From Dimorphilus gyrociliatus (lineage: Eukaryota; Animalia; Annelida): a stretch of 64,000 nucleotides of DNA. Location of the stretch: the NCBI GenBank assembly GCA_904063045.1, contig CAJFCJ010000017.1:248001-312000 (forward strand). Direction: 5' to 3'. The first letter of the stretch is position 1; the number at the start of each line of letters is the position of its first letter. The translations under genes were made by a program, and so were the position numbers. Under the pieces are notes generated by a model. It had not been told where the DNA came from. It ran no database searches and saw only the letters and a program-made list of their open reading frames with translations. Of this stretch, positions 50,702 through 63,691 are shown piece by piece.

Positions 50702-52834
50702 TTAAGATTCGAAAATTTTTTCCAAATTGACTATATTAAAAAGTTTAGGATCGGCTTCGATAATAAAGAATCTCTGTTTAAGGAATCTGTACATTTCCTT
50801 TAAATAACTTATCAAATTTGAATCATCTTGACACATTCGTATGAAAAATTGTGATGAAAGATTGAAATTATGACAAATTTCTTCAATATCTTTAACTAGC
50901 CTTAAAATTTGCTTATCAGGCAACTATATTTAAAGAGAATTATAGATAAGATAGAATAAATTGAAAATAATTTAAGAACCTTTTCGAAGAAATTATATCG
51001 AACTAATTGAGTAAAATCTTCGTTATTCTCCTTAGTCATTAGCCAAAATTCAACGCATGTCTCTATCCAATTGATCTTGAATGAAAAAAAAAAAAAGAAA
51101 TAAAGATAACAAGATAAAACAATAAAAAGAGTTAATTAATCTAAAATCTAATAAAACGCAAAATGTAACGCATATAGATTTTACTTTAGAAAATATGATG
51201 AATAATCGTAATAAGAATGAAAAAAGTTGAAGTTTAGACAAAATCTGAAAGTGTAAGAAAAAAAAAGAAAAAGTTGTTTAGGAATAAAAGATATTTAATA
51301 AAGTTTATTGTTTATGTTTACTTTGGAAAATAGAAAGAATTTGTTATTGAATAGTTTTGTAAGTGAATACAAAAATTTGAACCAAGTATTTAAGGATATA
51401 TCAGCTAAAGATTCTATAAAATTCAAGCAGATATAGATAATTTTATTCCAATAATATTCGTGAACCGATGAATAATTAATTTCGTTGATTATCTGGAAAT
51501 AATAATTTAAGGATAATCCAAAATTTAAATCTTCGTATTCAGATAAATTTAATGGACGAAAAGTTTGAACGTCAAGTTGTTTGAATATCATCTGTCATAT
51601 CGATAATACGATTATATATTAATATACGAATTGAAATATTTGTATATAAGTTTGAACAGACCTTCCATAATAAATCAATCTTACCAAATTCAATATTACC
51701 GTCATCTTTCATCTTTTCCACTGCCAATATATTTATTATTTCGATTGGAGAACTTAGATGGATTGTTCCTTGAAGATAATTAGCCAATCTATTTAAGATA
51801 TCAAGGTCGTTCTTGACCTAGAATTTGTTGGAGAAAGTTGAATATTTACGAAAAATATTAGTCTTACCAACCCTATCATTTTCGGCTGGTTTAAAAATGA
51901 ATAAATCGTCTCTATCGAATACAATAACAGATTCGTCGACATTCTTCAATAGGAAAAACTTTGGTTTAGGTTTTTGACATGATAAACGACTGTAAAAAGA
52001 AAAGAAACTTATAATAATAATACAAAGAGTAAATAACTATTATAGGAAACAATGATACAATATTAACTGCTCGTCTATTTGAGCCGATGTCTTTTGAAAG
52101 CCGACCAACATTATTGAGAGACTATCTAATTGCCAATCAGAAATCCAAAAGAAATGAAAAAATCGGATAAGGTTCAATGAAACGTTAAAGTTTAAGTGTA
52201 AATGCTTCAATTGTTTAACTTCCTTCAAACATTGAAATCCAGAAAGGCATAGAGCCTTTAAAGTATGAAGATATTTCAGATTTACTATGCTATCTAGACA
52301 TTTCACTTGAGTTCTATCGATATTTAAATCTTCTAGTAGTGTTACTTCTCGACAAATTAGATTTAAACTTCTTTCAGTAAATCCAGAATTGCTAAGATCT
52401 AACTTTCGTAACGATTTAAAATATCTTAAATATTCAACCTTTTTCAATCTGCAATACACTCTATTAGCAATACTAAACTCTTTAAGCTTGTTGAAATCAA
52501 TTATTTTCTTTAATTCGTCCAAAGATACTGCAGATGATGAGTTTTTCAATTCAAGAACTATAATTGGATGATCGATCAAAAAGGATAAGGTCTGTATATC
52601 TTTAATCTTATTAGCGTGTATAGCAAATCTATGTAATCTCGTGTCTAATCTACTAAACAATTGTAAATCTTCGTCCGATATACCGCAGCATAAGACGTCT
52701 CGAGATTCCAAGATCATCTCGGCAATGAGAGACGGTAATCTTAATCCTTTGGCGTGAACACTATTAAGTATTTCTTGGAAGCTCATAGAAACACGTTGAA
52801 GTGTCAAATTTCGAAGGGATGGAATAGAAACCAT
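50702..52834 (-). CDS. ZYG-11/ZER1-family LRR protein (putative CUL2 substrate receptor)
   Basis: N-terminal VHL-box-like SLRNLTLQRV...LPSLIAEMIL. LFSRLDTRLHRFAI...HPIIVLEL matches the ZYG11 pattern. LRRs (LRKLDLSN) and multi-exon helical C-terminus. Confidence 0.8.
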
Positions 52835-53087
52835 GATCTTTATTCTATTATACGAAATTAACGAATATTGGACCTATTGTAGAAAAAGTTTATCTAACCT
52901 TAACCTTCCGAAAAAAAAATGATTCTATATTCGTAATCGAGCTTTAAAATTCCTAGAAATTTTCTCCTAGAAATTAACAATATTATAGAAATATTTTAGC
53001 TTAATAATTCCGATTAATTATTCCAATAGAAGATTAATTACCAGCTCAAAACGTGTGCTCTAAGTAGTTATTTATGATTTAACGTGA

Positions 53088-53144
53088 CCCAATGGTTTTC
53101 GACCAATCAGCTTTCAGCTAACATAAAAAAAGCATTGGACCAAT
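53088..53144. promoter_or_regulatory. CCAAT cluster including the 31-bp element shared with 472-502
   Basis: CCAAT at about 53089, 53103 and 53140 plus ATTGG at 53134. Core CCAATCAGCTTTCAGCTAACATAAAAAAAGC. Confidence 0.5.
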
Positions 53145-53252
53145 AAGAATTTATTAATAAAATATATTTTTTTCGATAAGAATTTATTAAGATAAGAACC
53201 AATTTATTAATTAATTAGTTATCGAAATCTATAATTTTTTTATCTTTTTTTT

Positions 53253-55476
53253 CTACAAATAATTAATTGAGAAAGAAGAGAAAAACAAAACAAAATCTTT
53301 ACATTTACTACCAGGTTTCACTATTTTTTGCTAAAAATAAATTCAAGTTCATAATACTCAGACAAAACTACTTTCTCTTTTTTTTTGCAATTAAACATAA
53401 ACCTTAGGAAAATGAATTACGTTGCAACAATTGTCGTGTTCCTCCAGTACTAATTTCAATCTTTGAACGTAAAAACTATTCATATTTTTCATATATTTAA
53501 ATGATGGAATTTCCTTATAATCGCAATATTTAAAATTTGTATCAAGATCGGAAGAGATATCCTCAATTTCCTTTGATAGTTTAATAACATCGTCATTCGT
53601 CATCTTTTGTTGCGTTTAATAAGATAATAAGAATTAAATTAAGTATTAATAGAATAACAAACCGCTTCGAAAATATTCTCATTACTAAGCGTTACGAATC
53701 TATTATCGTTCTTTTCCTCCCATATCCAAGTAGCTATTTCATCTAGTTGATAAATCTATTGTAGCAAACAACAAAGAAAAGAGAAGAAACTATATTTAAT
53801 AATAATGAATATTAAACATATTTCTATTACTTTAGAAGCTACAACGAACGATCTCAATACAATTAGGAATAGATCAATCCTAGTAAACACCTGTTGAAAA
53901 ATATTAAAATATTATAAGGAATTAACATAATATATTAGGTTAAAGTAATAAAATATTTGAACCTTTTCAACAATAAAAAACTTGTTATTGAGAAGTGCCA
54001 TTATAATAGTAAAGTTATACTTAGTACAGGCGTGCAATGTAAAATAATTCTTTAATTTTAATAGATAAACGCATCCATTAATTACTTTTATCCAACAAAA
54101 TATGTCGTTACGATGATATTTTAAGTTACAAAGTATCTTTATCAATTGTCTAAAGCTATCTTGAGAGCAATGATATTCGCTTGTTAGTGTATTTGTATAA
54201 AAATCTTGATGTCCTATTGTTCTAAAGAAAATCTAAAATAGACAATAATTAATAGAAATCTATTCGTTTATTGTTTATTAATAACCTCCCAAATCATTTC
54301 AGTACGATTTGAATCAACAGGTGTCTTATCGAATTCCGTTTGGGCAATTGCTCTCATCTTTTTAACAAAGATACAAGGTATCTTACCAGCCAAATGCTTT
54401 GATACTTGAAAAATACAATCAAGATCGTACAAGTCGTCTCTCTAAATCGGGAAGGAAAAGTGAAAAATAATGAATCGTTATATAGATAATAAAAGGATTT
54501 AATTACAAAATTGCATTGTCCTTCACTCGAAAAGTTCATTGAACTATCGTATAGAAAGAAATGGTGCATCTTTTGAAAGAACAACTTCTTTATCTCTGGC
54601 TTTCTATTAAGTATATATCTATTTTGAAAAATGGTAACAAAAACAAAGGTAATTATTTATTAATAAATCTATTATGTAATACTTGTATATACTGTATTAC
54701 CTTGTATAATCTACGTATTCTATTGAATCTACTGAAAATTTCTTAATCGATATATTGGCAATAGTCCAAGTAGAATTTAGGAGGAATGTTAAAAAGTTTT
54801 TAAGATCGGATACCATTGTAAATTCAACATCCAACTCTTCCAATTGATTCAATTGTTGAAAAACTGAAAAATCTATTTCGTTTCTTGATTCAAAGAGAAA
54901 TTTAAATATTTTCAACTTTTGTAAGAGTTTAATCCCATTTAAATTCGATATTGAACTCTTTTGTATATTTAATTCTTCTAATAGTATCATTTTATTGAAT
55001 ATAAATGTTAATACTTCATCTTTTACAATTGTACCGCTTATATCTAATTTCTTCAGAAATCTCATTTGACCTAGAAATTCCAAATCAATTTCAAAGTGTA
55101 ATCCTTTATTGACGAATGTTAATTCTTTTAATTTCTTGCAACTGACAATATTCTTTAAATCTATTAACGATTTAAACGATAGATAATTAACCAATTCAAG
55201 ACTTTCTATTGGATGATCTCTTAGAAAGTTGAACTTTTTCAAATTCTTTATTTTATCACCCTGAATACTAAATTTCGATAGTTGCGTCTTAATTTTACGG
55301 ATTATCTCTAAATCTTCCTCGGTTATACCAAACGTTAAATCATCTCTCCACTCGATAATCATTTCAACAATCTTGGACGGTAATTCAATAGTTTTAAACG
55401 TTAAAGGATGAAATACTTTGGAAAAGTTTAATGAAATATAACGCAGCGTTAAATATTGTAAATCTCTTGTAGACAT
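53253..55476 (-). CDS. ZYG-11/ZER1-family LRR protein, tandem paralog
   Basis: MSTRDLQYLTLRYI...LPSKIVEMII...HPIESLEL...LKKLDISGT. Later exons are collinear with the neighbour (LLNNKFFIVEK vs LFNNKFFLFSK). The 3-prime end is approximate. Confidence 0.78.
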
Positions 55477-58950: not shown

Positions 58951-61108
58951 ATGTCTTGTCTAAAACTATTAACAATTAACGAGAGTAATCAAGTGACTAT
59001 TAATACAAACGCCAAATCGTTTCTACTGACAGAATGTAGAAATAGAAAATGTATTATCATAAGTATTACAGGTACATTTAGAAGTGGAAAAAGCACTTTA
59101 CTAAATTTCATTCTACATTTTATGAACAATACAACTGGTTCAATAAGAAACGTTTTTAACGCAAGATATGATTCCGATGGTCTTTCTGTTACTAAAGGTA
59201 TTTATAATAAATAAACAGTAAACAGTATATATACATTATATATTCATCTTTCTGTTTAAAAGGAATCGACTTTTTGCCAACACTCTATCTAAGGTTTCAA
59301 TTGTTTTCATTAGTTTAATATATTTTATTATTTTAATACATTTATTTCATTTATAGGCATAATTACGGCATACTTTTCGTTGATTCACAAGGTCTAGACA
59401 GTCCTGAACGACTCAGAAACAATGATCATTTAATTCTCGCCTTATTATTTCGCATCTCTTCAATAACAATTATCAATATAAAGGATAATCTAAAGCAATC
59501 AGAAATAGAAAAGTTACATGTAAAATTATTAGTTTTTTAATCATTTCTTATCAGCGATAATTAAAAAGTATTCATTATTGAAATTACCTTTTACAGTTGA
59601 GCATTTCGCATAGAATACAAAATGGAGGCAGTTACGAGACCGATCAATTTTCGGTAAATATACTTAAAAATATCCTGAATATCTGAGTATTAATTAGTAG
59701 TATTCTCTATTGCAGAATCTTGTATTTGTAATAAGAGATCGGAAGAAAAGAGATGTGTATGATCATGGAAGATTTAATTATAAATTCAAATTTAAGCAAC
59801 TAGAAGTAATTCTTTTATTTATTGTTCGTATATTTATTATTGTGAAATATCTTAATCTGTAGGAATTTCCCGAATTTGGAAATCTTCTTACCAATATATG
59901 GAGCAAAGAATCCCAATTTGTCTTATTACCACAACCGTTTGTGGATGACCCTGACAATGAAGATCTTATACATCTGAATGGTATTTAATTCGTACATAGA
60001 GACTTTTCAATCTATTAATGTTTGTTTGTATGTTTTAGAAATAAAAGAATCCTTTAAAACTTCATTTTCACAGTTTTTGGACGATTTATTAAAATTTAGC
60101 GACAGAATATCGAATTACGCTCGAACTGGACCAGAAATTATTAGACATATAGAACAAATTTCCTATGATGTAGTAAGAACTGATTGGATTGCGAGACCTC
60201 AGCGTCGAAGACAAGTACTGTCGGATATTGAAATGGATAAATTAAAACGTTCTGCTATTGATGCTATAAAGACTGCTGTATATGATTTATGTTGGGATTG
60301 CGTTCCTACAGAATCGAATTCGAATATGAGAGATATGAAGCAGAATATCGAACTGGAAAACAAGAAATTTATGAAGGAAGCATTAGACCACTTTGGAATA
60401 GATGATGCATATTCTAAACATGAATTTGAAGCTTCAGTACTTGAACAAATGAATATGTTGTTTAAAAGCATCCCTAGCAATATATCAAACTTTCGATCTA
60501 ATATATTAGATTGCTTTACGAATGATTTTGATTCCACTTTTGAAATTAATTACAATTATACAAGATATCTTGATGAAGAAGAGCTTTACGATTTTTTCAA
60601 TTATGCTGATAGAAACGTAAAACAATCACTAATTGATTGTTTCGATGAAGATATCTCTAAACGTATAGACGTAGAGGAGCTAATTGATGATAGAAAGCGA
60701 ATGATTAAACATTTTAACGAAATTTGGGATGTAAACGCAATTGAGCAGATTGGAGCAACATTTGTAAGATTTGGTAAGGCAGTATATGATTTCTTTGCTG
60801 AAGATGAAGAAGAGACTATGGAACGGTCAAAGTCTAAATTAATGAAAAAAATTCTGGATTTCATAAGAGAAAAATATCCAGCAGATGCTGAAAAACTATT
60901 GGATATGTCAAGATATCGTTTTAATGATAATAGTGGTTTCAATCCTTTTCTCCTGTCCAGAGCAAGGTTACCTAAGCATGAAATCAAAGAATTATTTGGA
61001 AAATATATGAATTCTGTAAAGTTCCCTATAAAAAGACAATTTTATTATCGTACTTCTTTCAATTACCGAAAACATAATAGTAAACACTTTAATTTAAGTA
61101 GTTTCTAA
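58951..61108 (+). CDS. Atlastin/GBP-superfamily (GB1/RHD3) GTPase lacking a TM hairpin
   Basis: G1 GTFRSGKSTLLN, G2 TKG, G3 LFVDSQG, G4 FVIRD across short exons. The long last exon is helical with no 20-residue hydrophobic span. Confidence 0.87.
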
Positions 61109-61210
61109 AGATCAAACATTTGCAGTTTGTTTATTTTGCAGTGTATCTCAAATTTTAAAAAAATACAGTTATTCATATTTTAACAAGCAAAAATCCATGT
61201 GATTTCAATA

Positions 61211-63691
61211 TTACATACATGTACAAATGCCAGACTTCTTATCTGAGCCTTGCCTTGACGCTTTACCCTTTGGAGTATTCTTGGTTTCGTTGTTATCATT
61301 GCCAATTTTGCATTTTTGATTATTATCATCTTTTCCGTACGCCTTATCATTCTTATAATCATCTTTCAGAGAACTGGTCCTCGAAACTCTGTATAATAAA
61401 ATGATTAGTTTAAAATAATAGTAATAGCAAGCGACATTACTCTGAATTGCTCCTAATCAAAATTGGTATCCTCTTCATTTGTTCAGTGTAAATATCGTAC
61501 ACAATTTTCTTCGATTCCAAAACTGTATTCAGGGAAAACTCTTGAATATTTTCAAGATATAAATCTCCTTTAATTCCTTGATCCCTTTGCAATTTTTGTA
61601 ACAATTCTTTAGCTTTATCGTTTTCTCTTCTGAAAATCTTTTTGAAAATTTCCAACATGCTGGGGAATTCATCCAATAAAATCTTCCATTCTCCAGCTAA
61701 TTGGTTAGGTAAAGATTGGTAACCTTTCAATGATGCTTCAATATTCAAACCAAGTTTACACAGATATTCATCAGATATTGATTGCAATTTGTGTGAAGAG
61801 GCGTCTCTCGATTCGTAAAAGTCTTTCAAGCAATCGTAACCGAATGAGTTAAATGTTTGAACTATTTTATATGGAACAAGTCCAATTTGTCCGTAAAACT
61901 TTAAAAGTGCAACTGTTGTCCTCATGATAAACATTCCATTTATAATTTTAATGGTCTTCTTTCTTTCATTGACAATACTTTGGACATCAACTTGTCTCAG
62001 CATTTTTCCCTGGTGTTTAAACTGCAGCGCACTTGTAACATTTCTCTCGGCTCCATCGAAACATTTCGAAAGGCTTTCAATGGAAAGAAATGAAGAATCT
62101 CTTAAAAATTGTCCAATAGTATTATCGAATCTATCATAAAAACAATCTATAATTTGTTTTCGTAATTCTGTGGATTGCGATTTTATATCTTTCAAAGCTT
62201 TATCTATATGTTCATTTATTGTGGATGAAAACATTTTCTTATCTTTTTCATTGTCCATTCTTTCTTCTTCGAATAACTCTTTCGATTTTTGATGATATTT
62301 CTTACGTAATTCTCTTCCACGATTTTCAATTTCACTATCATCTATGTCCATTGGAACACATTCACAAGACAACTCTACAGTTTCCTCTTCCAAATCCTTA
62401 AAGATGTCTTCTGCTGTATTTCTAACTTTTCTATACGACAACAATTCCCTCACCGATCTGGGATTTTTGATTCTATCGTTTGTTTCCAGATTTTGTAAGA
62501 CTTTCTCGATATTTTCTAATATTTCTGGTCCAGTTCTTGCCATATTTAATATTTTATCACAAAACTCGAAAAGATCTCCAACAAACGCTTCCATTGCAGT
62601 TCTGAAATTATCTCCGAAATCTGTAATATACAAAAATTCATTGATTTAATGATTATCTTCCATTTAAAATTGTTTATTTACCGTTCAAGTTGATTTCATC
62701 ATTTTCCTGATCATCCAATCTTGGATTAGGTAACAAAGAAAATTTCGTTTCTTTCCGCCAAATGTTCTTCAGAGTTTGACCTAAATCTTCGTAATTCTTT
62801 TAATGATATACCGTTAATTATCAATGAAATAATAATACGAAGACAAAAATCCCATTACCTCAAGCTGTTTTGCTTTGAATTCATCATTGAATATGCCATG
62901 CTTATACTTATCTCTCTTACTTCTGTCTCTTAGAACAAATAAAAGATTCTGAAGTAGGAAGATAAAAGGCTATTTAAGTAATATCACTTTCATATATAAA
63001 TTAATCTTACTGAAAAATTTTTCAGCTCATTCTCCGATCGATTCTCAACACTTATCATTAAACAATGCTAAAAAAAACGTCATTCTAATATCATTTTCTT
63101 ATCAATTTTAATAACCCAATCAACTTACACAAAGGGCTTCTGTTTCGGACTCTTTTAATACTTCCTTTGTATTTAAAATAGTTAGTGATGAAACGTGAAG
63201 TAATATTGAAAAAATCAATAAATCATTAATCTGTAATTTTTCAGGACTGTCTAAACCCTGCGAATCCACGAACAGTATGTGGTAACCCTTCCTATGTATA
63301 ATATATTGAATGAGAAAAAAAAAGCTAATGGATAAACTTAAAACAAAAGAAACCTTTCAACTGAAAAAGGCCAGATATCGATTCCTGTGGAATATAAGAT
63401 TAATCTGAGACGGTTGTTAATTAAGTCAAAAACAGAAAATAAACCTTTTGTGACAGATGCATGATTCTCGTCGTATCGAGCATGAAATCGATTTTCAACT
63501 TTATCCGCCGAAGAATACAAGTAATGAAGAATAAGATTTAACAAAGTACTCTTTCCACTTCTTAATACCCCAGTTATACTAATAACAATACATTTCTTGT
63601 CCCTACACTCCTTCCGTAGAAAATCAATAGCTGATATATTCAATTTCGGAGTATTATTTTCATCAATTTTTAACAAATTTATCGCAGACAT
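61211..63691 (-). CDS. Atlastin/GBP-superfamily GTPase with C-terminal CaaX motif
   Basis: G1 GVLRSGKSTLLN, TKG, LFVDSQG, FVLRD. A 52-nt GT-AG intron (61389-61440) joins in frame to a last exon ending ...KGKASRQGSDKKSGICTCM-TAA (stop 61211-61213). Confidence 0.87.

Follow-up and report, generated by a model that had tools for sequence, protein, structure and literature searches.

Can an atlastin-type GTPase do without its membrane hairpin and reach membranes by a lipid instead? Atlastins are textbook dynamin-superfamily GTPases that are built permanently into the ER membrane; their immune cousins, the GBPs, are soluble and targeted by a lipid. A locus of the miniature marine annelid Dimorphilus gyrociliatus raises this question, as a sequence-only reading of it had proposed an atlastin-type GTPase that swapped its transmembrane (TM) hairpin for a CaaX prenylation box and thereby took on a GBP-like design. 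We analyzed the gene concerned (here gene A) and its convergent neighbour (gene B) in a stretch of 64,000 nucleotides, referred to as the window, which comes from contig CAJFCJ010000017.1 (GCA_904063045.1) and has a GC content of 26-39% across its length. The features discussed below are collected in Table 1.

Table 1. Positions of the features of genes A and B in the window.
Feature	Position	Strand	Remarks
Gene A	61211..63691	(-)	8 exons, 686 aa; TM-less atlastin-type GTPase; assembled open model
Gene A exons	63691-63445, 63384-63354, 63291-63129, 63067-63011, 62948-62859, 62796-62682, 62620-61441, 61388-61211	(-)	
G1/P-loop RSGKS, aa 44-48	63548..63562	(-)	atlastin/GBP-type arginine; aligned to atlastin GAFRKGKS
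G3 DSQG, aa 102-105	63255..63266	(-)	aligned to atlastin-1 DTQG
G4 LRD, aa 172-174	62925..62933	(-)	aligned to atlastin-1 VRD
Segment MRTTVALLKFYGQIGLVPYKIVQTF, aa 467-491, earlier read as an eroded hairpin	61851..61925	(-)	mean Kyte-Doolittle value 0.64; best 19-residue window 1.23
Terminal intron, GTAATG...TATTATACAG	61389..61440	(-)	52 nt; GC 0.231, in the range of gene A's other introns
Exon 8 (tail)	61211..61388	(-)	58-59 residues and stop; Lys/Asp/Asn-rich, probably disordered; assessed by GC, codon score and open-frame simulation
Predicted CaaX box, Cys683-Thr-Cys-Met686	61214..61225	(-)	stop at 61213-61211; Cys at -4 given the predicted splice
AATAAA poly(A) signal	61130..61135	(-)	first base 76 nt beyond the exon 8 stop; none in the terminal intron
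Gene B, DgyrCDS10782, convergent paralogue	58951..61108	(+)	7 exons, 591 aa in the revised model

Gene A and its domain organization

The coding sequence assembled for gene A has 2061 nt, a number divisible by 3, and consists of 686 codons and a stop with no internal stops. Its seven introns are all of the GT..AG type and measure, in order, 60, 62, 61, 62, 62, 61 and 52 nt; the frame is open only if the last of them is taken out. An in-frame TAG lies 6 nt upstream of the ATG, and the start codon appears sound because the N-terminus is kept in the paralogue (MSAINLL in gene A and MSCLKLL in gene B).

The public annotation of GCA_904063045.1, which is informed by RNA-seq, calls no gene at this position and leaves a gap between DgyrCDS10782 and a gene for a 4455-aa EGF/cadherin receptor. 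Moreover, an exhaustive phmmer search of exon 7 against 1.84 billion protein representatives returned gene B as the sole match, and no overlapping gene A protein. Word-indexed searches returned B itself and nothing else, whether the query was exon 7 of gene A, full-length B or the G-domain region of B (E up to 10), so that neither type of search found an orthologue of gene A in the protein collections covered. Judged from its reading frame and splice sites, gene A is a real, intact and so far unannotated gene, and the practical gain is that a missing gene can be added to the D. gyrociliatus annotation and the model of neighbouring gene B corrected. The annotated upstream neighbour on the minus strand (51818-55476) has a product of 649 aa, for which no Pfam hit is recorded and which is unlike A and B by tblastn.

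The RxGKS, DSQG and RD motifs named in the sequence-only reading were found as RSGKS, DSQG and LRD. Gene A also carries TKGI (aa 81) and LLPNP (aa 217, an atlastin-like LLPxP), and all five motifs are kept in gene B. In both paralogues, Pfam recognizes a single domain, the N-terminal GBP domain PF02263 (exon 1, 23-27 bits); the GBP_C domain PF02841 has no match in the Pfam search even when E values up to 1 are admitted. When PDB sequences were searched, exon 1 of gene A gave E 3e-5 with fly atlastin and E 0.75 with GBP5, and full-length B gave E 6e-6 with atlastin-1, with no GBP among its matches up to an E value of 10. We then built a family profile from the G-domain exons of A and B and searched it against the PDB, the scores standing in for a tree. 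The profile matches atlastin-1 with E 1e-15 and 61 bits (profile positions 7-239 against ATL1 residues 39-292), atlastin-3 with E 1e-12 and fly atlastin with E 8e-12. Xenopus RNF112 (PDB 9jju; PMC12012479) and GBP5 follow at E 4e-6, both with about 30 bits, and GBP1/2 at about E 1e-4; Sey1/RHD3 is not among the matches of this profile in the PDB. These scores agree with the earlier preference for an atlastin type over a GBP type. By this measure the GTPase domain of gene A, about 235 residues long, is atlastin-type and strongly diverged, and with its motifs it is probably active.

Behind the G domain, residues 236-627 (about 390 aa) are predicted to be all-helical. An AlphaFold2 model of this region, made from a two-row alignment, is likewise all-helical with a mean pLDDT of 46.5, which is too poor for fold comparison. 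A profile search gave no PDB relative of the region, including the atlastin chains that contain the three-helix bundle, and gene B was its only relative in the large protein collections. By hydropathy in 19-residue windows, no TM segment is present in the gene A product once the G-domain core is set aside. The highest Kyte-Doolittle mean, 1.82, lies in this core (aa 114-132) and the best value elsewhere is 1.23, so the absence of a TM hairpin claimed for the protein is borne out. The same cannot be said of the segment at aa 467-491, which had been taken for the eroded counterpart of the atlastin hairpin. This segment is moderately hydrophobic and includes Arg, Lys and Gln, and gene B has two 7-residue gaps opposite it in the alignment; the segment has no atlastin match and belongs to a helical region without detectable similarity to atlastin or any PDB entry. 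As a remnant hairpin it is unsupported.

The predicted CaaX end and the terminal exon

The explanation that we prefer runs as follows. Behind an atlastin-type G domain with intact G1-G4 would come a lineage-specific helical region, about 390 residues long, but no hairpin. Removal of the last, 52-nt intron would then add a flexible, basic tail of 59 residues with a CTCM end, and cytosolic farnesyltransferase would modify Cys683. The farnesyl group and the nearby lysines would together provide a reversible membrane attachment in a protein whose ancestors were integral to the ER membrane. Finally, GTP-dependent head-to-head dimerisation of G domains would act on the recruiting membrane, so that the GBP1 design would be approached from the atlastin side. 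Splicing in vivo, farnesylation and membrane targeting are steps that we infer from the gene model. Taken as a whole, a functional atlastin-type gene with a farnesylated tail is somewhat probable.

In the tetrapeptide CTCM, a1 is Thr, a2 is Cys and X is Met. Met at X is the preference of farnesyltransferase, while the residue at a2 is not classically aliphatic. The last 20 residues of the gene A product (PKGKASRQGSDKKSGICTCM) carry a net charge of +4, and this charge followed by a CaaX resembles the ends of K-Ras4B and GBP1, both of which consist of a polybasic stretch plus CaaX. In a yeast CXXX screen, farnesyltransferase was limited mainly by D/E/K/R at a2 and by K/P/R at X (PMC10320760), and CTCM breaks neither restriction. 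The case was picked from many genes, and we estimate that a permissive CxxX would end roughly 1-2% of C-termini by chance; at such a frequency the motif alone is therefore suggestive and not proof. A farnesylation signal at the C-terminus is plausible for this one gene of one species.

It may be that the tail is made and CTCM is merely its chance end, which would leave a soluble cytoplasmic GTPase without lipid, comparable to the silkworm protein BmAtlastin-n. Several observations fit such an end: the CaaX is not shared by gene B, the sole detectable relative of gene A; Cys at a2 is non-canonical; CTCM is absent among the entries listed in the supplements of two CXXX screens; and the paper on BmAtlastin-n describes a cytoplasmic protein and does not mention a CaaX (PMC4926086). 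On the other side, none of the rules from the yeast CXXX screen is broken by CTCM (PMC10320760), the tetrapeptide closes a flexible segment whose net charge is +4, and the superfamily of gene A works on membranes. We consider a chance end unlikely, although it deserves to be taken seriously, and hold with moderate confidence that the gene A product is spliced and prenylated.

Another possibility is that the protein stops earlier. Exon 7 ends in an open reading frame ...IRSNSE, with ...TCAGA/GTAATG at the boundary and a TAA overlapping the donor, and this is the SNSE* end given by the ORF track. If the 52-nt segment were kept, as in the intron-retention product suggested before, translation would indeed stop at ...SNSE through this TAA, and the downstream frame with CTCM would be a 3'UTR that is open by chance. 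If the intron is removed, a phase 2 junction joins GA to A GTT TCG... and the frame continues as E-VSRTSSLKDDYKNDKAYGKDDNNQKCKIGNDNNETKNTPKGKASRQGSDKKSGICTCM-stop, which starts with E-VSRTSS and ends with KKSGICTCM. For the shorter protein speak the missing annotation of gene A, the length of the terminal intron (52 nt versus 57-77 nt in the other twelve introns of both paralogues) and the fact that two frames are open in the tail stretch.

The splice sites and the composition of the tail point the other way. Intron 5 has the identical donor hexamer GTAATG, and intron 6 has an acceptor (TATATTACAG) similar to TATTATACAG of the terminal intron. Introns of D. gyrociliatus have a median length of 66 bp, and short ones are spliced efficiently (PMC7854359). 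Exon 8 has an exon-like GC content of 0.365, compared with 0.31-0.39 in the other exons, 0.18-0.28 in introns and 0.23 in the 3'UTR. Under a codon log-likelihood model trained on exons 1-7 of both paralogues, the frame dictated by the splice scores 0.44-0.51 bit/codon, the best of the six frames and equal to the usage of exon 7 (0.52 +/- 0.11); the references for non-coding sequence and for the antisense frames of exon 7 are -0.57 +/- 0.15 and -0.15 +/- 0.19 bit/codon, respectively. The second open frame of the tail region reaches 0.09-0.17 bit/codon and needs poor acceptors. Moreover, when non-coding sequence was simulated with a Markov model, keeping the donor in place and accepting any AG at a distance of 40-110 nt behind it, an extension of at least 59 codons arose in only 1.4% of cases. 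The AATAAA signal that starts 76 nt beyond the exon 8 stop, with none inside the terminal intron, likewise speaks for a coding tail exon.

Two more in-frame AG acceptors, giving introns of 61 and 67 nt, lead to the identical C-terminus. Antisense to the tail exon, a 61-codon ORF ending in CIIK-stop (61219-61404, plus strand) scores -0.06 bit/codon, and probably owes its openness to the Lys/Asp/Asn-rich composition of the sense frame.

The SNSE end is thus improbable. Exon 8 is very probably coding, and it is highly likely, as far as codon usage and splice signals can tell, that the terminal intron is spliced as predicted. Every sequence statement that had been made on the SNSE* end, the 52-nt GTAATG intron and the in-frame last exon was reproduced, and the exon reads like coding sequence, with CTCM at its end behind a basic stretch.

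Paralogue B and the history of the pair

Genes A and B converge, with 102 nt (61109-61210) between their stop codons. The AATAAA of gene A lies 22 nt from the stop of gene B, and the 3'UTRs must therefore overlap on opposite strands. The two genes share their exon structure: exons 1-6 measure 247, 31, 163, 57, 90 and 118 nt in B, and 247, 31, 163, 57, 90 and 115 nt in A. Their products are 53% identical over residues 1-235 and 20-37% identical over the helical region. A tblastn search of the window and of the 22-kb locus revealed no third copy.

The similarity of the pair bears on whether gene A could be a young pseudogene, duplicated from the annotated gene B and now silent or decaying, with a C-terminus without function. 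That gene A is missing both in the public annotation and in every protein collection searched would be in keeping with such a copy. Nothing, however, is disabled over 2061 nt in a 30%-GC genome; none of the 14 splice sites deviates from the canonical form, and all of G1-G4 are preserved. Furthermore, the GTPase domain differs from that of B at 47% of residues and yet is open, which would not hold for a long-dead copy. The matching exon sizes, together with a GTPase domain that is 53% identical and keeps its motifs, argue for long-term purifying selection, and we regard a decaying duplicate as very improbable.

The public model of gene B (562 aa) cuts out an in-frame segment of 87 nt, GTAATC...ATTACAG, within exon 1 (58985-59071, plus strand). 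With this cut the product loses 29 residues, among them the strand CIIISITG that immediately precedes the P-loop. The corresponding residues are present in gene A, where a donor of this kind is missing. The 87-nt "intron" looks like a mis-annotation, or is possibly an exitron. At the other end of gene B, a donor GTAAAG at 61017 (61017-61083, plus strand) is followed by an AG about 64 nt on; its use would give an end ...GKYMNS, with TAA just after the junction. The C-terminus of gene B is uncertain, and no variant of it gives a CaaX.

Gene B has no TM segment, no usable CxxX-stop and no counterpart of the tail exon of gene A; a search for a hidden CaaX exon of gene B gave short or antisense hits and nothing else. 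Because the paralogue is without hairpin and without CaaX, the word "swap" is too strong. Gene A itself has no hairpin and, in the spliced model, does have the CaaX motif, but the single exchange of one for the other was overstated. Comparison of the two genes suggests that the hairpin was probably lost once, before the duplication of A and B, two separate losses being the alternative. The CaaX would have been gained in A or else lost in B, and the likeliest order is loss of the hairpin, duplication, and a CaaX in copy A only.

Comparison with atlastins, RNF112 and GBPs

That gene A might be an ordinary invertebrate GBP whose CaaX was inherited from the GBP lineage is hardly credible: Pfam does give the shared PF02263 alone, and the layout of a G domain, a long helical region and a CaaX is GBP-like, but atlastins score about 30 bits above any GBP with a whole-domain alignment that includes LLPxP, PF02841 is missing even at E 1, and the paralogue is without a CaaX.

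The atlastin-type gene with a predicted lipid anchor can be compared with four known systems. The atlastins themselves (ATL1-3 and that of Drosophila) are the best match of the G domain (E 1e-15 to 8e-12) and align over its full length; they share with gene A the R-x-GKS P-loop, T-x-GI in switch I, D-x-QG, RD, and LLPxP after G4. The three-helix bundle of atlastin-1 has about 100 aa, as against the helical region of about 390 aa in gene A. Gene A further differs from atlastins in that it has no two-TM hairpin and no detectable sequence similarity to the three-helix bundle or the C-terminal amphipathic helix, in that its G domain falls short of theirs by about 50 residues and matches with only about 60 bits, and in its predicted CaaX end.

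RNF112 carries a RING finger; gene A has none, as its frame begins directly at the G domain, and no TM segment either. RNF112/ZNF179 (9jju; PMC12012479) has, like gene A, branched off from the atlastin/GBP line of dynamin-superfamily proteins, and its G domain matches at E 4e-6.

The silkworm offers a published parallel in the lack of a membrane segment. BmAtlastin-n, of 770 aa, has an atlastin-group G domain and a coiled-coil and no TM segment; it is cytoplasmic and antiviral, and silkworm Atlastin3/4 are also without TM segments (PMC4926086). Compared by description, BmAtlastin-n and gene A have in common a G domain, a long helical or coiled-coil part, a C-terminal part, the lack of TM segments and a similar size (770 versus 686 aa). 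The silkworm protein has experimental antiviral data, and no CaaX is mentioned for it (PMC4926086). The novelty that had been claimed for the design is therefore reduced, since TM-less cytoplasmic atlastins, one of them antiviral, have already been published (PMC4926086). Among the matches listed in a limited full-text search, no paper links an atlastin-type protein to a CaaX box.

An immune, GBP-like function of gene A is speculation, and we rate it as doubtful. With similar reserve it may be proposed that annelids, and perhaps other spiralians, possess a lineage of atlastin-derived GTPases that use a farnesyl group and a polybasic stretch for targeting instead of an ER hairpin. Gene A would be one member of this lineage, in which the GBP1/2/5 design would have been reinvented, possibly for cell-autonomous defence. 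If gene A does encode a farnesylated atlastin-type protein, the change from an integral to a switchable membrane attachment would have arisen more than once in the superfamily. A review of GBPs asks whether atlastins have assumed defence roles in those invertebrates that have no GBPs (PMC9005921), and gene A would then offer a tractable invertebrate case for this question.

The vertebrate GBP1/2/5 share their layout with the predicted product of gene A. Gene A differs from them in a weak and partial match of the G domain (E 4e-6 to 1e-4) and in having no GBP_C, and its CaaX would therefore be convergent with that of GBP. In both cases, a soluble large GTPase has a long helical region and a basic patch, and ends in a C-terminal CaaX, which in gene A is predicted.
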